A DNA stretch of 64,000 nucleotides from positions 604,966-668,965 of the forward strand of contig NW_005434646.1 of assembly GCF_000315625.1 (NCBI RefSeq), written 5' to 3'. The DNA is from Guillardia theta CCMP2712. Lineage: Eukaryota > Protista > Cryptophyta. The stretch's first letter is position 1. Each line of letters starts with the position of its first letter. Both the position numbers and the translations under genes were made by a program. This document shows, in pieces, positions 4,299-55,823 of this stretch. The notes beneath the pieces were generated by a model, which saw nothing but the letters and a program-made list of their open reading frames with translations, was not told the origin of the DNA and ran no database searches.

Positions 4299-4779
4299 AC
4301 TCTCGGGTCTGATGGAGGGAGAGAAGTGCAGGTCCTGTTATGAGGTCGGTGCCCCTTACATGTGGAGTGGGATGAATGCTATGAGAGGCAGGGAATGAAG
4401 GGCGGCCAGCTCCACCTCAAGAAGGCGGAGGGAGACGGAAACGAATCCACCGGAACGAGGTTGTACGGTGAAGGGGTAGAGCGAGAGGGGCACGAGGAAT
4501 CCCCGGGGAAGAGAGAGAAGGGAGGAAGAGGAAGAGAAGAGAGGGTGGAGGAAGAAGCAGAGACGCTGTTGGGGTAAGGATTGAAATCAGGGCACCATAA
4601 ATCCCGTCGCCTCTCCTGCCGGCACCTCCCCGCACATACCCAATCGTAACCCTCATCCCCGCACCGTCCAGTTCATTATCAAAATTGCAGGCCTGCCTCG
4701 TTGTTATGAGCTAGAAGAAACGAGGGGCAGAAGTCATCCCAACTTCTGAAGCCATTGCAGCAACACGGGCCGGGCCGCC

Positions 4780-6175
4780 ATGCCTGAGATCCGACTCCTC
4801 ATGGCACTCCCCCGCCCTCTTCTGCTGGTGCTGATGGTCATGGTATGGTTGCCCCTTCCATCCTCTATGCCCGTCAACTCAGGGCTGACGGAGACGAGTG
4901 TGGGCGTGAGCTGCTGTACGTCGAACCTTGCTCCACACATCTTGATTGTACACCTGCGCGGAGGAAAGAAGAGCAAGGCAAGGATTATTCACAACTGGAA
5001 GCCAAAGCACAAACGAGAGGGTGAGAATCCTCTACAGATCAACAAAGCTCATAGAAAGAGAAGGAAGGAAAAACAGAATGAGAAGGCAAAAAGAAAGCTG
5101 AAGAACGTACTGGCATCATGCAAGATGGAGGATCGCGAGAACTATCACGAGATCGGCTTGATAGACAACCCGCAGTACACACATCAGTTCATTTCAAAGA
5201 AGCAAGACATTCTGAGAGGCAAGCTGCCGGAGAACATCGATGATAATCTTGAGCCACATGAGATGGAGGAGCTGACAATGAGCAGGAAACCCTACACAGG
5301 GGGGCTGGACGATGGATCGAAGGCGATCGATACCAAAGGGAATGATGAAATTCTGATGACAAACCAACTGGACAACGACGAAGAATTGTTATGGGACGAT
5401 CTTGTTCAAGGTGCTCATGATCTTCTGGAGACGGCAGATGTTTTGAAAGACCCTAAACAATTCTCTGAAGGAGATATTGTGAAATACAGGGAATCTGACG
5501 GGACTTTCAGAATGGCTGAGATCGTTTCTATTGACAGGTCGATCATCCCGCATTCGTACGGCATTCGACTTGAGGTGAATCGATGAGACTGACTTGCTCC
5601 TGCTCTGATGATGCTGTGTCAGGGGAGGATCAGGGAGACGGTCGAGGAGAGAATTGAGAGAATATCAGCACCTGACAAGAAGAACGCCAATGAAACTGCC
5701 CTCGTGTCAATGAAGATTGACCCATCAGAGCGATTCTATGACTTTGAGCGAGGGGTCTTCTTGCACCCTCTGCTGAGAGAAGCGAACATGAAGCGAAGGA
5801 TGAAACGAGAGTCTGGGGACTGGCAGAACCATACCCTGATCCCGATGAGAAATGTGAGGGCCAAAAACGTAAACATGAGGGTGCAAGGAAAGTCCGCGGG
5901 TGGAATAATGAACGGCCAAGCATCAAGTACTCTGGAAAATGAAGACAGCGATGAGGCGTTGGAGCGCGTGTTGGACTACACCCGGCATGCAAAGCGCAAG
6001 CAGATCCTTGAAGCAAAGGTAAAGTTTCCGTTTGCCCGCTACCATTTGCTGAATGACCCTGGTACAGGCACACGAAAGAGAGTATCAGCGCAAATGCGGA
6101 ATCTCTGAAGCGATTCGACCACGTGGCCACGCCAAGATAAGACAGGACCACCGATTCCGACGTTACAACCGGTAG
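4780..6175 (+). CDS. Hypothetical protein with signal peptide + LRGG leader, basic region and SH3/Tudor-like module; periplastid-compartment candidate
   Basis: ORFs 4780..5586 and 5608..6108 joined by GT-AG introns, last exon ends RFRRYNR*. Leader ends HILIVHLRGG. Module FSEGDIVKYRESDGTFRMAEIV. Confidence 0.7.
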
Positions 6176-6306
6176 AGCACAAGGAAATATTCCTACGCCA
6201 GCGAAAGTCAAAGGCTTGTGAAGTATAATACCGATTGGGCAAAAGGAACGAGAAGTGAATGTGAGAACGAGATCGTCATTAGATGAGACTAGCAGACTCT
6301 TTGCTG

Positions 6307-8325
6307 TTAAGCAGCTTTTTTCATCGGAATAGTTATTCTTCTCCTTGAGCGAACGAAAGACAAGACTTCATCCGAAATTTCCTTCCTTCGCTCTTGATGT
6401 CGCTTCACAATATCCTGGCAGATCATCACAACTTCATCTTGAGACAGAAAATTTCACCTGAAGGCAGGAGATCGCCTCTGACTTCATCTCTCCACTCAAG
6501 AGTGTGCCGTTGGTGTAGGATCCTGTGATATCCTTTTAGTGCCATCAACTCACTGGCAAGGAGCAAGTTTACTCGCTAGTTCTTGCACATGCGTGTCGTT
6601 TTCATGGAAGAATTCGATGTATCTGCCAGAGATGAGCGCGGAAACAACAAGATGATCGGGCACCTGAAGGGGACATCGACCTTCAAGTCGCCTCCCAATC
6701 TAGATAAGGATCAGGTCAACAAGAAGATGAATAGTCTGTGACATATCCTACCTGCGATGCTCTTCCACTGTAGCTCGCCCGCCAGTGAAAGCATATCTGT
6801 TGATCTTGTTCTTGATCTGCAGATGAGAATAGAATCAATTGTTTTTCACGATGCATCTTGTCTCCTCTACTTGTTGAGGAGAGTCTGTGAGATAAATGGC
6901 GGACTCTTCCACGGACGCGCTCATCTTGCCGGCACCTCCCGAGTCGCCTTGCAGCGCAGGAATGAATTTGCTGTGCAGCAGAGCCGGTTTTGTCCTACAA
7001 ATGTTTCAGCAGGAGCTCCAGGAGCAAGCACTAGACATGTTCAATCTCGCTGCGACGTCTCTTGCCAATCGGAAATACGGATCTTGATCAATCGCACAAG
7101 GAATCAAGCAGGGCAGCCCTGGCTTTCAATTAACATTGTAAACTAGGATTTCTCCGTACTCACTCGTAGAGCCCCCGAAGATGTCCACGAAACAGTCTGG
7201 GAAAGATGGAGCAATCTGGTGAAAAAGTTAAGGAAGAAACCCCTCTGTTGTGACAAATCACCTGCATTGCAGGAAACGCAAATTGCCCAACGTTGTTGCT
7301 TTCTTGTAGTCCGAAGACAGCTTGAACTTTGTTCGCATTAATCAATCTGCAGAAATTCCTCCATTTAAGAGTCCAACATGAGGATAAAGACAAGGGAACC
7401 TCTGGATCTGCAAGACAGTTGGGTAGAGCGATGAGATGTCCAGGGTGTTGGTGAAGATATAAGTCAACTCTGGGTTGAAACCTGAAATATGTTCTTCAGG
7501 AAACCCAACAACTTAATCAAAAGTCGCACACCTACTGCCATAATATCTTTGGCGTTCTCGGTCGCAAACTGTTGATACGTGCTAAGATTGCCTCCCTGAA
7601 GGTTGTTGAAATGGCAAACTCATCACAAGCAAGACTTTGACCTTCCAGAGAAACTTTTCATCGTCCGTCAGTTGTATCACGACCGGAACATTGAAAGCCT
7701 CCTGCAACAAGCGAATGGCCATCAGTCAATCGTCTTTCTCAGAGCAACGATCTTCACTTGTAGCCATTGCGTGATCATGAATGGAATCAGATGTCCGACA
7801 TGAAGAGAGGATGAGGAAGGACCCCTGACATTCAGTGAGCACAGCTCTGTGAGAACAACCCAGATCATTGCACCTTCCGGTATAGATATAGAATGGTGTC
7901 CCAGCTTCGTACATGTCAAGTATCTTATCGAGATCTCTGTGAGAGAAGAAGATATTCCTGTGAGCAAGGAGTCACATCGACCGTCGAGTGAGCGAGTGAG
8001 GTTTCCTTCTGATGAGGTGGTGCGCTGCTCTGCCAGTCACTCGCTCAAGTCTGCTGATAAGCTCGCTGTCAATCTCCTGGTGGCGAACATCAATCCTTCC
8101 TTCCGCCTCCCGTCTCATCACCTTGGACCCGAACAACGTGACGATCTTCTCGTAGTCTGTCTCCCCCTCCACAGAGTATGGCGTGATGTTTGACGTCCGC
8201 TGCTGATCCTCCCCTCCCCGAAGTCGCACCACGTGTCTGCAAGTGGGACCTCTGAGAGTACATGGCATGGTTCCGGATTGCACCATCAATGAAAGAATAA
8301 CAAGGATGACCAAATGTTGCTGCAT
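6307..8325 (-). CDS. WARS: Eukaryote-type tryptophanyl-tRNA synthetase with N-terminal signal peptide; likely periplastid-targeted
   Basis: Motifs [23 protein letters not shown] (HIGH), [30 protein letters not shown] (KMSKS). About 14 introns; ends PMKKAA*. Confidence 0.95.
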
Positions 8326-8502
8326 GGAGGCGGAGGAGACTGGAGGCTCAGGGCTGGAGGCATACGTTAGCTCATGAGTTTCTGCTGACCTCTACTCTTT
8401 GGACGGCCTTCATAAAAGTCCCGCACCATCGCTAATATTCATTCTTTCACGAATAAGAGATCGTGATCCCTTTGATACTCTACCTGCTCCTCCCTCTCCT
8501 CC

Positions 8503-8710
8503 CGCCCTCTCCTCCCTCTGCTCCCTCTGCTCCCTCTGCTCCCTCTGCTCCCTCTCCTCCCTCTGCTCCCTCTCCTCCCTCTGCTCCCTCTGCTCCCTCT
8601 GCTCCCTCTGCTCCCTCTGCTCCCTCTCCTCCCTCTGCTCCCTCTGCTCCCTCTCCTCCCTCTGCTCCCTCTCCTCCCTCTCCTCCCTCTCCTCCCGCTC
8701 CTCCTCCTCT
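8503..8710. repeat. 9-bp minisatellite (CTCCCTCTG/CTCCCTCTC)n between divergent genes
   Basis: Directly visible tandem array. Confidence 0.95.
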
Positions 8711-8949
8711 ATCACCACCACTATCTGCCATAGACAAGACGGGATGATGAGTGTTCGCATCTCATCACCACCTACCAACCCCCACCTTTCTCAATCACCC
8801 CAGAACTATCTAGGGGTGGGGTCAATTCATCAGGATCTCTTGCATGGGTCCATCGTTGCATGAAGACGAGGGAGGGTAGCGCCAGGGAGCGCGTGGGTAG
8901 GACTATCAGGCATGTAGGCATGTAAGCATGTAGAGGCAGCCAAGCCACT

Positions 8950-10361
8950 ATGCAAGCATGGCTAAAGTTGGGTCCTGGCGTTCTTCTCCTGCTCCTGCTG
9001 TCGGAGGCAAGGTCCACCGATCCCTCCGTCCCCACACCATGCACCAAGTTCGAAGTTGACAAGCGCTGCATCCTTGGGCACGAGGGCTCGGTGAACTCCT
9101 TGGACATCGCAGACGGCAGACATCTCCTGCTATCTGGAAGTGAGGATGGAACTGTAAGGGCGTGGGACACGCGGACTGCAAGATGCGTGCTGCTGTTGTC
9201 CTCGGAAGTCGTGGCACGAGGTATTCCCCAGAAGGCAGTGACATCGGTAGCGCTGTCTCGTGGGAGTGATTACAACGTCTACTTTGCAGCTGGAAGCAAC
9301 GTGTTAGCTTTCGACACCAGATACCCGAAGGCGCCGGAAAAGGTTGTACAGACAGAGCTGAAAAAGGATTCATCGACGGTCTCAGAGCATACGATAAGAA
9401 AGATCGCGATAGATTATAACAGCAAGTATCTAGCTGCAGCAGATGATGGAGGGGAGATCCACGTCATAGACTTACAACGTCTCAGGTTGATTTCATCTTG
9501 TCGCTTCACTCCTGCACTCAAATAACCACGAACGCAGCCGCAAGATTTGCACTCTACAAGGAAGACATGAGGGCAAGGCGACTTGTTTGAGATGGAGGAC
9601 ACCCCTGCCTCTCTGGCAGCATGATCTTGTGTCAGGTGGACAGGTGATCAGACGTCTCGAGGTTTGCTCGGGAATCTGACGAGTTCATGACAGGACAGTC
9701 GATTGCTACTGCATGGCCACAATGAATCTAGTACCTTTCCAGAGGGCTACAAAACCTATTCACACGTCCTTGAAGACATGATTCCGAGGAAGGTCAAGAA
9801 TGCGTTGATCAAGAAGGGCAGAATCCAGAAGGGGCAAAAAAACCCAGAGGTGGAGTGTCTGGATGTCTCAGCGGACGGGAAAACAGTGGCATTGGGAGCA
9901 GGAGATGGAACGTTGAGAACATTCTCGCTGCTGTATGACAACGAAATCGTGAAAGAGTATGTCTTCAAACAAACAAAAGGTATCATCAGCTGCATCTCAT
10001 TTCCTCGACTTGCTCCTCAGGTTGCTTGTTCTCTGTTTCTCCTGCCTCTACTGATGAAGGTGTCACTTCAGTACAGGGTTTTCACAGGCTCTCGAGACGG
10101 AAGGCTCCAGCTGTGGAACCTCGTGGAACCTCGAACGTGCGCACCTGATGCGCACTTGATAGGAGATCAGCTGATCTTGCTCGAAATCATGCATGGACAG
10201 AAGCCGTGAGAGTCTTTAAGCTTTTCTCCACTGGGTATTGATGGAGTTCTTTGTGCAGGAGGGATGTGGTATGTCAACTTGTAGGAGTCCACAGCGATGT
10301 TCCGCACTTCATCGTTGCGGATAACAGCAAAGTTATCTCTTTGTACACCTTGCACTGTTGA
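8950..10361 (+). CDS. WD40-repeat protein (WDR53-like) with N-terminal signal peptide
   Basis: GHEGSVNSLD..LLSGSEDGTVRAWD, YLAAADDGGEIHVID, FTGSRDGRLQLWN. Leader MQAWLKLGPGVLLLLLLSEARS. Four GT-AG introns. Confidence 0.85.
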
Positions 10362-25701: not shown

Positions 25702-28545
25702 TTACATCGAGTCGTATTGAGGGCCTCCAGATCCCTCTGGTACAGTCCACTTAATGTAATTTCCTGGAGTCTTGATGTCGCAAGTTTTGCAATGGACACA
25801 GTTCTGAGCATTGATAACGAGCTCTGTCTTGCCTGTTGTCACAGTCAGCATGTCTGATAGCTGAAGCAACTCGCTGACCTGTTTGTTCATCTACAGTATA
25901 TTCATAAACCTTGGCCGGGCAAAAGCGAGTTTCAGGAGCTCCGTATTCCTGAATTAGCAGTCAACTAGGTTGCGCCTGCTCAAGTTGCACCTGATAAGAG
26001 ATGGAGGCAGGCCACTCGACTAGCTCGGGCTTGACTTTCAAGTGAGCTGGTTGGTCCTCGTGGTAAACTCCACTGAGCAATAGAAACGTCACTTGAAAGT
26101 TACATGTCAGAATCTTGTTCCGAACCTTCGCGTCAAATTCGTAAGAATATCAAACGTGATCTTGCCGTCGGGCTTTGCGTACTCGATCGGTGTATAACTA
26201 TCACCCACTTACTCAAACTCGCAGAAGAATTTTGAGACTTACTGATCTTTCTTGCCCGTCGTTGCATGATCTCCAATGCTCTGCCTCCATTTCAACCAAC
26301 CTCCAACGTCAAGACGTCATAATACGCCAATACCTTGTTCCTAAATGTCCACGGCTCTGCTCCACCAAATACTCGCAGAGTGAGTCCTGGAGGACCTTAG
26401 AAGCTACTCATACGAATATTGAGATAAAAACCGGAATAAAGCAATCCGACGTAAAATCCCCACTTGTAGGATGGGTGAACATTTCTAACCTACATTACAA
26501 CCTGCTTTAGCTCCTCACGGTGTTGGATCGTCTCTACCTCGTTCAGTTCCTTCCAGACCCACGAGTTTTCCATAGACTTCTGATATCCTGTCATGCGATT
26601 GTAAATATTTTCCATGTTCGCAAAAGCTTCACCTTTCACTTCCAGTGATTCAAAGGTATCCACCGATTTGCCGCTAAACACTGATTCATCCGATTGATTG
26701 TACAAAGCCGCAAAGACCTGGTAGACATTATGTTGAGGAATTTTCATTCAAGACGAAATTACCTCTTCGGCTGCAATCATTCCACTTTTCATGGCAGTAT
26801 GAGAGCCCTTAATCTTTAAGAGGAATGAGTTACGAAAAAGCACAAACGTGGATGAACCTTTGCAACGTTGAGAAATCCTGCGGAGCAGCCCACAAGCAAC
26901 CCTCTGTGAAATGAAGTCAGACATTGTTGCAAGATAGGTCACAAGTACAAACCCTTTGAAAGTGAGTTTGGGAATTGCTTGGAAACCACCCTCATTCAGC
27001 GCACGTGCTCCATATGAAATGCAAGTGCCGCCCTGACACACCTTATCACAGATCTCAAACTGCACAACGTCACACTCGTACCTCCAGATGCTGTCGGATG
27101 GACGGATGGAGCTTCCATCGCTGCCATTTTGAATCAAAAGTAGTGATACGACCACATCCAAACCTGAAACTCTTGATAAGGCGACAGATAAGGATTCTTG
27201 TAATCTAGACCGAGAACGAAGCCCACCAAGACCTAGAGCGAAATATCAACACAAAACATTTATGAATTCAACAAATTTACCTTGTTCGGCTTCATATGAT
27301 ACAAGAACGAGCCACCATATGACTGAAGAACAACGGTGAGGTGTTTGCAAGGAAAACAATGAGAAGATACCTGAGTGTCTAAAGGCCATCCAACCGTATG
27401 TTGAACAAAACCTGGCTTATGATTCTCTTCCGGAATTTCCCAGACCTGACGTAAAGTCATGGAATAAATTCACAATTGGAACGCAGGGATATCATTCCAC
27501 CCAACTCACCTCTTTCAAACCGATTCCGTACGTTTGCATGTCCTTGCCTTGCCGAAGATCAAACTCCTTGATGATCTCTTCTGAGCAAGAGCCACGACAT
27601 CCCTCAGCAAAGACTGTCTGTCGCGCCCTGAGCTCTACACCGGGTGTGAAAGTATCTTTGGGCTGCAATGTAGCGTCACAAAATGTCTTACAAGATTCAA
27701 CATAGTACAACACCTGCCCATTCTTGTCAATTCCTACATCCTTGATCTTGATCCCCTTGACGCTCTTATTCGAGTTGTACAAGACCTCACTAGCAGCGAA
27801 TCCTACCCCCAAACGAATCAGACTTCAGGAGAAATGCTTCGGGACATTCACCTGGGTAGATTTCAATTCCCATGTTCTCTGCTTGTTCAGCCAGCCACTT
27901 GCAGAGCCTTCCCAGGGAGATGATGTAGTTCCCATGATTATTGAGGCTGCTCGGAAGCGCCCATGAGGGGATGTTAACCGATCCGTTGTCGCCGGTGAGA
28001 ATAGCGAACTGATCTTGCGTAACCTCGGTCTCGAGGGGAGCACCGAGCTCCTTCCAGTTGGGGAAGAGTTCGTCCAGTGCTCTGGTCTCGAACACGTTTC
28101 CAGAGAGGATATGGGATCCAACCTCAGCTCCCTTCTCGATGACACACACGGAAAGCTCAACGTTGCGTTCCGCAGCGAGCTGCTTGAGTTTGATGGCTGT
28201 AGACAAACCCGCAGGGCCAGCCCCAACGACGACCACGTCGTACTCCATGGCATCGCTCGCTTCATTTCCAGCACAAAAGTGGCGTCTCATGGCCCTGCAG
28301 CTGGAACGAGGATGAAGCCGCCCTCGTGCACCCAGCACGTCACCGGCTAGCAAGCTGTAAGCTCGGCTACCCACCATCACGCTCAGCCGCTGACGGGTAG
28401 TGGAGGCAGCAGGCACTCGAGCAGCATGCGGAGCAAGAGAGAACTTGAGCCTCTTAGATACGTAGGATGTGCAGGTCTGTGACGAGCGGGCGAGGAGCTG
28501 ACGGCTCAGCGTCGGTCGCCATCGCACACCGGCTTTCAAGAGCAT
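25702..28545 (-). CDS. ETFDH: Electron-transfer flavoprotein-ubiquinone oxidoreductase, mitochondrial
   Basis: [66 protein letters not shown]; Arg-rich transit peptide. Confidence 0.97.
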
Positions 28546-53792: not shown

Positions 53793-55823
53793 GAGCCTGC
53801 TGTTGCCTCCTCTTCTCCCTTCCCGCCAAGGATGATCTCCTCGTCATCCTGTGTCGGCAGGATCTTCCAGGACGTGCGCACGCTGACGTCATCTGCTCTG
53901 TGGGCGTCCGCTGTTACCTCCACCACCTGGAGTCCGCAGGCAGACAGCAGCTGGTTCTGTCGGGCGGGTCAGGGGGGAACATCAGGAGGCAGCTGCACTC
54001 ACCGGCTGGTCGTTGACAAGCGACTGGTCGACGGAGTCGTTGAGCCAGAGGGACCGACGGACTTCTGGCATGCAGAAATCACTCGCACATGACGCGCGGC
54101 AGCACCTCCTCACCTCCCATGCATGTGGCAATCATGCTGTCGTCCACCGCCGCCTTCCCCTGTAGCACATCAGGTCGGGGTCGGTTGACGGGACCGGCAC
54201 GACGGGCTTACCATTCGCTTCGCCTCTCGCACCAGATACCTCTCGGGAGAACACATTGTCCACATGATCTTGTTCCAATGTCTGCCAACGAACCTCACTG
54301 GCTCTCTTAACCTCGAAGACGAGACCTCAGGATTCGCCGAGTCAGCTGATTGCACAACGTCTTGTCGTAAGAGCTTCTTGCGATGTGAGCTCGAGTCTGC
54401 CGCACGTCATCCTCTCAACCACCCCTGGTCATGCACACCTGAGACTGGAGGATCGTGATGGCTGCTGCTCTCCTTCTCCTTTCCTTGTCGATAGTCTGGC
54501 TGCGCAGACAGTCACTGCCAGGACCAGAAGCACGATGCTCTTCTTACACAGCCGAGTGTCGTCGTATCGACGTCTGCAAGCGACAAGCAGCAAGGGCTTG
54601 TAACCTGCAGCTGGTCAGCCGGGGGGGAGCGGGAGGGCATCGAAAGAGCCTGTTGAGATAGTCTCTTGAGATGGAGGTGAACTCGCTGGCCCGGAACTTT
54701 GACAAGCATGAGAAGAGAAAGGCAGAGACGCGACTAGTCACCTCGAGGAAAGAAGTAGCGCGGGTGAGATGCCGCTTGTTCAATCTGACGAACTTCCTCG
54801 ACCAGTGGCCGCGAAGAGTTTTCTAGAAGCAGTCAAGCAAAGAACGGCTCTCAGGAGTGAGAGGTAGAGGAGTGAGAGGTAGATCACCTGTATCTTGATG
54901 GCGGCAGAGATCTCAGCAGAAGAACACTTGTTCCTCTTACTTCTGTAACATCCAGTCATGTTGATCAACCCGGACCAGACGTGCCAACATCACATGGCAG
55001 CACAGAACTTTCGGAGAGCCCTGACGATTTTCCTTGAAGCGAAGTGCTCCACCACCAGCATCCTCCTGCAAGATCTTGTTCAGACCACTTTGACCTTGAA
55101 CGCTCTCCTCCACCTCTCTCTGGGTGCCAGTGAGAAAACCTTGGCTCCATAGATGGAGAGCATGACGCGGCTGTCTGCCATGGCCTGCAGACGGCAAGTT
55201 CAGCTTGGCCTCAAATCTGACGACCTAGCGATCTGCGTCACCTGCTCCTCGACAGGAAACAGCTCCCCTCTCGCTCGCCTTGTCCGCAGCAACCAGCCCC
55301 TACACCCTCACCATCACCAGTAGACAGCGGCCCCCTCCCTCCTGCCCTCACCTGACGCACTTCTGTATCAAGATGACAGCTTTCTGATCTTCACTCGACA
55401 TGATCGGGTGGTCCAACAGCTGATTGATGGTCTCGCACACCGACACGACATCTGTCCTCCTAGCTCAGCACAGCATGCACTGCCGTCAGGACTACCTCTC
55501 TTCGCGCGATTGATCCACGTGGATTGAATGGCTTCATACGTAGCTTCCTTGTCGACCTTGCAGAACTTTCCTGCAGTTGTCCCCTTCGTCGCTTCTTCCC
55601 TGTCAGAATAAACCGTCTGGGTCGAGGATTTCCCCTTGGAGGGAGCTCTCTGCGGGTTCAACTCAGCACTCTCGGATGTTCTCCCGTCAGTTAGAGCGAG
55701 CTCACGCTGATTCTTTCCTTCGTTGTCAAGTTGTACTTCAACACGTAATCCTTGACTGGTCAACAAGCTCAGGCGACAAAGCACTGAGAAATGCACCGTA
55801 CCTCCCGACTCCTTCCATAACAA
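53193..55823 (-). CDS. Hypothetical low-complexity protein with IQ-like motifs (multi-exon)
   Basis: AAIKIQ and KAIILQSSYRCHQAR motifs, poly-Q and regular short introns. Boundaries poorly defined. Confidence 0.45.

Follow-up and report, generated by a model that had tools for sequence, protein, structure and literature searches.

A ubiquitin-tail-like LRGG box closes signal-peptide leaders of Guillardia theta, a cryptophyte, and may mark a maturation site of periplastid proteins

Gene models and leader architecture at the locus

The window analyzed here is a stretch of 64,000 nucleotides from the cryptophyte Guillardia theta CCMP2712 (contig NW_005434646.1, positions 604,966 to 668,965 of the forward strand; the assembly comprises 87.1 Mb in 669 contigs). 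It contains two convergent genes whose products start with a signal-peptide-like segment, and in both the leader ends with LRGG, the C-terminal tail of ubiquitin, present as RLRGG in one and as HLRGG in the other. One of the genes, GUITHDRAFT_86582, encodes a eukaryote-type tryptophanyl-tRNA synthetase (TrpRS), the other is referred to as gene A. The proteins GUITHDRAFT_99447 and GUITHDRAFT_86582 are encoded in the assembly and are annotated in public databases as originating from G. theta CCMP2712.

The TrpRS gene spans positions 6434–8325 of the minus strand and has 15 exons encoding 404 amino acids, a model that is based on spliced contigs of three runs, a frame check and a match to PF00579. 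Translation starts with the ATG at 8325 and the first ~18 residues form the signal-peptide-like segment (8272–8325, end approximate), a hydrophobic stretch that passed the hydropathy criterion. It is followed by an Arg-rich linker of ~15 amino acids (8227–8271) that contains neither Lys nor acidic residues and diverges in orthologues, and then by RHVVRLRGG, in which RLRGG (residues 34–38; 8212–8226) is identical to the last five residues of ubiquitin. Gene A is located on the plus strand at 4780–6175 and encodes 432 amino acids in three exons (4780–5574, 5623–6018, and 6068–6175; spliced contigs, splice-site and frame check). Its ATG lies at 4780 and its signal-peptide-like segment covers residues ~1–29 (4780–4866, end approximate), with Arg residues preceding the core PLLLVLMVMVWL, and likewise passed the heuristic. 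The leader ends with HILIVHLRGG (residues 53–62; 4936–4965), immediately followed by KKSK and a lysine/arginine-rich stretch. By the hydropathy heuristic, both proteins possess an uncharged hydrophobic core of 11–12 residues inside the first 25 amino acids. A first-pass annotation of the window, made from the sequence alone, had placed RLRGG at 8212–8226 behind the signal peptide of TrpRS and HILIVHLRGG at 4936–4965 in the convergent neighbor, and these coordinates proved exact.

Both leaders lie wholly within the first exons. These exons are covered without interruption by spliced contigs (4751–5572 and 8121–8355) from three runs of three studies, the RNA status of the runs being guessed, and because of this uninterrupted coverage both leaders are considered to be part of the mature transcripts. 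The spliced TrpRS reading frame carries LRGG at residues 35–38, HVGH at 128 and KMS at 307. Of the 404 positions of the RNA-supported model, 400 are the same in the annotated protein P0018, including all of residues 1–90, and the annotated GUITHDRAFT_86582 is 36 amino acids longer, the extra residues corresponding to stretches that are removed by the RNA-supported introns. The spliced sequences of TrpRS and gene A were translated for frame and length only; homology searches were done with the exon-1 open reading frame (ORF) and with database proteins.

The TrpRS introns are 41–56 nt long and all but one have GT..AG borders. The exception is intron 2 (7955–8002, minus strand; 48 nt), which shows no GT..AG at any equivalent cut position yet is spliced out in all three runs. 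Intron 1 (8077–8121, minus strand; 45 nt) is in frame and stop-free, so that a mechanically called ORF continues across it. Gene A and TrpRS converge at 6413–6457, where the 3' ends of their transcripts abut or overlap, and in two runs single assembled contigs cover both genes.

Between residue 21 and the GG the TrpRS leader contains four Arg and neither Lys nor Asp/Glu, and that of gene A one Arg, no Lys, one acidic residue and nine Ser/Thr. In neither leader is the hydrophobic core followed by Phe, Tyr or Trp, the signal-peptidase site itself being an approximate one. Neither first-exon product gave a Pfam ubiquitin match. As the beta-grasp fold by which ubiquitin-family members are recognized is missing, the leaders mimic the tail of ubiquitin only and are not counted among the members of this family.

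Recurrence of the box behind signal peptides

When the window is translated in all six frames, LRGG comes up just twice, exactly in the two leaders. As null model the fraction of six-frame codon positions that lie in an open frame 20–90 amino acids after a signal-peptide-like Met, i.e., a Met with an uncharged hydrophobic core behind it, was determined for 256 kb of the genome and amounts to 2.8%. Both LRGG of the window are found 20–90 amino acids past such a Met, for which the chance probability is P ~8e-4. In the same 256 kb, with the targeted sites excluded, 2 of 16 LRGG occurrences are in leader context, whereas eleven tetrapeptides taken as controls are found there in 4 of 271 cases.

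A DNA pattern for the extended motif LRLRGG has 353 matches in the genome and its reversed control 255. Among the first 20 LRLRGG-coding sites, which constitute the recurrence sample, 11 lie 20–90 amino acids past a signal-peptide-like Met and one more (L014) narrowly fails to qualify, with 0.56 expected (binomial P ~1e-12). The enrichment behind signal peptides over background, which the first-pass annotation had put forward as a way to check its idea, is thereby seen in this sample, with 11–12 of 20 sites against the null of 2.8%. If ~55–60% of the 353 pattern sites are taken as basis, the number of LRLRGG leaders can be extrapolated to very roughly 110–270, and the reversed-pattern control (353 vs. 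255) implies a smaller excess than this 20-site extrapolation. Neither box of the window fits the strict LRLRGG pattern and the family is therefore larger than what the pattern captures.

The box-bearing genes are mutually unrelated and several have no Pfam family. L016 encodes an EF-1alpha-like GTPase (4832–5140, minus strand; C3 ~1065.1–1065.4 kb) consisting of signal peptide, linker, LRLRGG, and then GKEK, which we take to be the start of canonical EF-1alpha. Its Pfam GTP_EFTU match starts four residues past the GG, and judged by this sequence arrangement it is the clearest case of a box at a putative mature N-terminus. The protein is presumably an elongation factor for nucleomorph translation. 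Further box-bearing products are a S-adenosylmethionine-dependent methyltransferase (L011), for which a homologue search returned the G. theta protein itself as sole match, and a RETICULATA-like membrane protein (L017). In the leaders L005 and L014 the identity with ubiquitin extends up to seven residues, VLRLRGG. Between the leaders of different genes the box is the only shared sequence. Lys is absent between signal peptide and box in 11 of 14 leaders (those of the window and L004–L021), and two to six Arg are present there.

Conservation of the box in TrpRS orthologues

TrpRS exon 1 aligns to the solved TrpRS structures from Trypanosoma brucei and human starting at residues 43–45. Homology thus begins ~5–7 residues past the GG, which ends at residue 38, in agreement with the first-pass claim that the conserved enzyme starts a few residues behind the box. 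The TrpRS exon-1 ORF was searched against cluster representatives and a metagenome TrpRS of 50% identity was used as second query. In a marine-metagenome genomic ORF that is 95% identical to TrpRS both RLRGG and the signal-peptide segment are conserved. The Hanusia phi TrpRS, 56% identical over exon 1, has another signal peptide of the same type and a partly changed linker and keeps PLRLRGG, and the 50% identical metagenome TrpRS reads SRLRGG. LRGG is kept in P0007, in P0009 (LSLRGG, behind a linker of ~110 amino acids) and in P0012 (LCLRGG), and variants are found in P0010 and P0011 (RVRGG) and in Baffinella frigidus (LRLRGA). Altogether the box ahead of the conserved core is retained in the 95% relative, in Hanusia phi and in five metagenome proteins. 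The linkers of the orthologues vary in sequence and in length from ~18 to ~110 amino acids, and in the top group of TrpRS the box ends 4–25 residues ahead of the conserved VTAFEVKG-type start. Among the matches listed, signal peptide and box are both absent from the cytosolic TrpRS, including those of red algae, kinetoplastids and dinoflagellates. A quick maximum-likelihood tree was built from 43 of the 120 listed proteins, and in it the TrpRS with a leader, including those of G. theta and Baffinella, form one clade (SH-aLRT, the approximate likelihood-ratio test support, 90); the tree supports neither a red-algal nor a host origin of this clade and gives it no clear sister group. A box that is kept across ~50% protein divergence, with the rest of the leader drifting, shows the pattern expected of a selected element.

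These data bear on two explanations that do without a present function of the box. It could be argued that two LRGG fell behind hydrophobic N-termini by coincidence, as the motif has just four residues and occurs 16 times in the six-frame translation of 256 kb. The null test for the window, the statistics of the 20-site sample and the conservation across species speak against this so strongly that coincidence is refuted for practical purposes and retains next to no probability. The second explanation considers the box as a historical leftover, i.e., a leader cassette derived from a ubiquitin fusion that spread from gene to gene through duplication or the shuffling of exons and serves no function today. 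It would account for tails that reach VLRLRGG, for the location of the leaders in first exons and for the loss of the box from gene A of one close relative, which is described below. However, a spread cassette is difficult to reconcile with leaders of different genes that have nothing but the box in common, and the retention of the TrpRS box over ~50% divergence with wholly changed flanks indicates purifying selection on the box. We regard the leftover explanation as very improbable. It is, on the other hand, highly probable that the box is a functional element closing the leaders of proteins of the periplastid compartment (PPC).

Identity and predicted destination of the two proteins

The PPC, a remnant of the red-algal cytoplasm, houses the nucleomorph and its 80S ribosomes. 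As nucleomorph mRNAs are translated in it, the PPC requires its own eukaryote-type synthetases (PMC4494062). Three TrpRS genes were described in G. theta, a cytosolic one, a plastid/mitochondrial one and trpRS3, which was predicted to be targeted to the PPC (Gile et al. 2015, PMC4494062). The leader of the G. theta tyrRS1 was localized to the PPC of a diatom (PMC4494062). The window TrpRS is a class I enzyme of the eukaryote/archaeal type with a HIGH-type (HVGH) and a KMSKS-type (KMS) motif, and PF00579 matches both the locus and P0018. An enzyme of this kind has to get into the PPC and, being a eukaryote-type TrpRS with a signal peptide, it very likely corresponds to the trpRS3 listed by Gile et al. 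2015 (PMC4494062), who do not mention a RGG motif.

For gene A no Pfam family was found above the cut-off. Past the leader its product contains 21 Lys/Arg in 53 amino acids, followed by a region conserved with Hanusia phi (P0002). This strongly basic N-terminal stretch together with the Hanusia-conserved region hints at a protein that associates with nucleic acids and may belong to the nucleomorph. The presence of the box lends support to GUITHDRAFT_86582 being the synthetase for translation in the nucleomorph system and makes gene A a candidate for a nucleomorph-associated protein.

Relation to known targeting and processing signals

In bipartite signals the absence of an aromatic residue (or Leu) at position +1 separates targeting to the PPC from targeting to the stroma. 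The window leaders resemble the bipartite PPC signal of cryptophytes and diatoms, in the form in which it is relayed by later accounts, in that a short non-acidic region comes behind the signal peptide (Gould et al. 2006; Gruber et al. 2007 via PMC4494062; PMC12136025). They also resemble it in the cargo, a eukaryote-type translation enzyme that the PPC needs, and may do so in the lack of an aromatic residue near the presumed cleavage site. In contrast, the rule as relayed in these accounts concerns the first transit-peptide-like residue and the general charge and mentions no ubiquitin-tail box at the far end, and the window linkers are very short (~15–33 amino acids) and nearly free of Lys. 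For Phaeodactylum it was reported that lysines of the transit peptide are required for import by SELMA, the symbiont-specific machinery derived from endoplasmic reticulum-associated degradation (ERAD) (Lau et al., as quoted in PMC5487736). The Lys-poor linkers of the cryptophyte compared to those of diatoms hint at a different interplay of the leaders with the ubiquitin machinery.

The conserved box at the far end is an addition to the known bipartite PPC signal. It is not described in the text of the ASAFind 2.0 paper (PMC12136025), and in the searchable literature, which leaves figures and subscription journals out of reach, LRGG or LRLRGG was not found paired with periplastid, cryptophyte or plastid-targeting terms; within the same limits, the surmise of the first-pass annotation that the motif may have been noted before finds no counterpart. 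The periplastid and nucleomorph proteome of cryptophytes was estimated to encompass ~2,400 proteins (PMC4494062), and ASAFind 2.0 was reported to recall ~25% of the diatom PPC proteins (PMC12136025). Prediction of periplastid targeting is poor in algae with red-derived complex plastids, and a short conserved box would be a sharp marker for the cryptophyte periplastid/nucleomorph proteome.

Ubiquitin precursors share with the leaders the terminal four to seven residues, and a cut after the GG would free the downstream protein as in ubiquitin-ribosomal-protein fusions. They differ in that the leaders have no beta-grasp fold and comprise just 38–62 amino acids of signal peptide and linker. The Toxoplasma protein PUBL, a ubiquitin-like plastid protein associated with SELMA, is similar in carrying RGG at the leader/mature junction and in being a protein of the periplastid space of a red-derived complex plastid, but it is a single apicomplexan protein, whereas the conserved G. 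theta box is shared by many proteins that are unrelated to each other.

Short protease-read motifs are also known from other systems: PEXEL, the Plasmodium export element, is cut by plasmepsin V, and the papain-like proteases of coronaviruses cut LXGG and double as deubiquitinases. PEXEL exemplifies a motif of four to five residues, located a few tens of residues behind a signal peptide, that is read by a protease, and LXGG one that is recognized without the ubiquitin fold. The compartment, the enzymes and the lineage are different and these systems serve as analogy only.

A three-part leader and its possible maturation

The layout of the leaders, their expression, the genome-wide recurrence of the box and its conservation in TrpRS are observed; the following mechanism is proposed on this basis. 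Gene A and TrpRS would be nucleus-encoded proteins that are delivered into the PPC of G. theta by a leader consisting of three parts. The signal peptide would mediate entry into the lumen of the endoplasmic reticulum around the plastid. The short, Arg-rich and almost Lys-free linker would act in a transit-peptide-like manner for crossing the periplastid membrane by the ERAD-derived SELMA. The third part, a box of a hydrophobic residue, any residue and L-R-G-G that equals the C-terminal tail of ubiquitin and is located a few residues before the mature protein, would be the maturation site. A PPC-resident cysteine protease specific for ubiquitin tails would cut after the GG as it is done on ubiquitin precursors, and with the leader removed no transit signal would be left, so that the protein would be held in the PPC and would not proceed to the stroma. 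TrpRS could then charge tRNA-Trp for the translation of nucleomorph-encoded mRNAs, and gene A would probably act as a nucleomorph or nucleic-acid-associated protein. For this explanation as a whole, from PPC delivery and the three-part leader to the predicted cut by a ubiquitin-tail protease, we consider the chances to be evenly balanced. The cut after the GG by a deubiquitinase (DUB)-type enzyme, taken for itself, is predicted from the sequence with middling confidence.

Several lines of background make such an enzyme plausible. Presumably ubiquitin is encoded in the nucleomorph as a precursor, for which reason a ubiquitin-tail hydrolase is expected in the PPC. The protease that matures peripheral plastid proteins was described as unidentified (PMC5487736). 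All four nucleomorphs sequenced from cryptophytes encode a putative deubiquitinase (UfSP/ZUFSP-like) to which no role has been assigned (PMC6559170); this protein, Gt2_270 in that study, is a lead as candidate enzyme. For the periplastid maturase, the box would indicate the probable site of the cut as well as the enzyme class, and it would link import and sorting to the ubiquitin system derived from ERAD in a directly testable way. As a tentative extension, one can imagine that the resident ubiquitin-tail hydrolase is itself the missing periplastid maturase and that its cut constitutes the sorting decision between PPC and stroma, a possibility to which we give somewhat less than even weight; if true, it would account for cryptophytes that lack ptDUP, the periplastid deubiquitinase of diatoms, and for leaders that avoid Lys.

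A number of observations weigh against the proposed mechanism. The term signal peptide stands throughout for the hydropathy heuristic and not for SignalP, the PPC localization of TrpRS and gene A is a prediction from their sequences, and the cut after the GG is deduced from sequence. Most DUBs need the ubiquitin fold for efficient cleavage, and none is located upstream of the box. A PPC-targeted deubiquitinase was not found among three loci for ubiquitin C-terminal hydrolases (UCH, C12), as two have no leader and start at the domain and the third is ambiguous. The absence of ptDUP that was reported for cryptophytes (PMC12412216) plausibly cuts both ways, as it weighs against DUB-type cutting yet leaves the role of the maturase vacant. 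In Toxoplasma PUBL, the RGG in front of the ubiquitin-like domain was proposed as DUB site but was found to be unprocessed and dispensable (Fellows et al. 2017, PMC5487736).

The counter-example closest to the window comes from gene A itself. In a ~96% identical Guillardia relative, a metagenome contig (L001:321–1127, ENA project PRJEB17505) aligned to window positions 4780–5586, the box reads LRGR because the last Gly codon is changed to AGA (G4963A). Seven of the 16 amino-acid differences between the two sequences fall into the 62-residue leader (~1 in 9 residues) and nine into the remaining 202 residues of exon 1 (~1 in 22). Contig L029 of the same project keeps RLRGG in TrpRS. The LRGR is either a contig error or the box is dispensable for gene A, for which the orthologue search yielded only this close relative and a Hanusia protein that is truncated at the N-terminus. 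Taken together, the GR in the relative of gene A and the GA in the Baffinella TrpRS show that the diglycine is not inviolable. The ubiquitin-mimic leader signal suggested by the first-pass annotation therefore holds in part: the box is real, recurrent, positioned at the leader/mature junction and conserved in TrpRS, the cut by a DUB-like protease is a prediction, and the LRGR in the relative of gene A, the unprocessed RGG of PUBL and the reported absence of ptDUP from cryptophytes speak against it.

These points are also what an alternative can build on in which the box is functional but not a DUB site. In this case a SELMA or PPC factor would bind it or use it for sorting, for release from the translocon or for retention in the PPC, or it would be the substrate of an unrelated peptidase that prefers L-R-G-G. 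The conservation and the junction position suit any functional reading, the GA and GR variants would be poorly tolerable for a strict DUB, cryptophytes are without ptDUP, the RGG of PUBL stays unprocessed, and leaders that are nearly free of Lys may relate to ubiquitylation in another way than the diatom model has it. However, a match of up to seven residues to the ubiquitin tail is hard to explain unless the reader evolved on ubiquitin tails, and cleavage at the box would yield a native-like N-terminus, as illustrated by the GKEK of the EF-1alpha-like protein, presumably the canonical start. We consider this alternative unlikely, though by far the most serious of those weighed here.

Further observations in the window

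Divergent from TrpRS, with 625 bp between the ATGs, lies a gene for a WD40-repeat protein (8950–9525, plus strand), in which a signal-peptide-like start leads straight into the WD40 domain without a LRGG box. The signal peptide suggests that this protein is another periplastid candidate; being box-less, it indicates that the box may not be universal. The intergenic region between TrpRS and the WD40 gene contains a simple-sequence tract (8470–8750) that reads SLCSLCSL, PSAPSAPS or EEREQREQ depending on the frame.

An ORF at 54455–54661 (plus strand) has a signal-peptide-like start with NLQLVSRGG 56 amino acids in, i.e., SRGG and not LRGG, and a stop ten codons later; it may represent another leader exon of the box type or have arisen by chance. 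A flavoprotein ORF at 27790–28545 (minus strand) shows a DAO/FAD-binding Rossmann start after an Arg-rich extension of ~100 amino acids without hydrophobic core. This extension looks like a mitochondrial presequence and provides a contrast within the window to the signal-peptide leaders.

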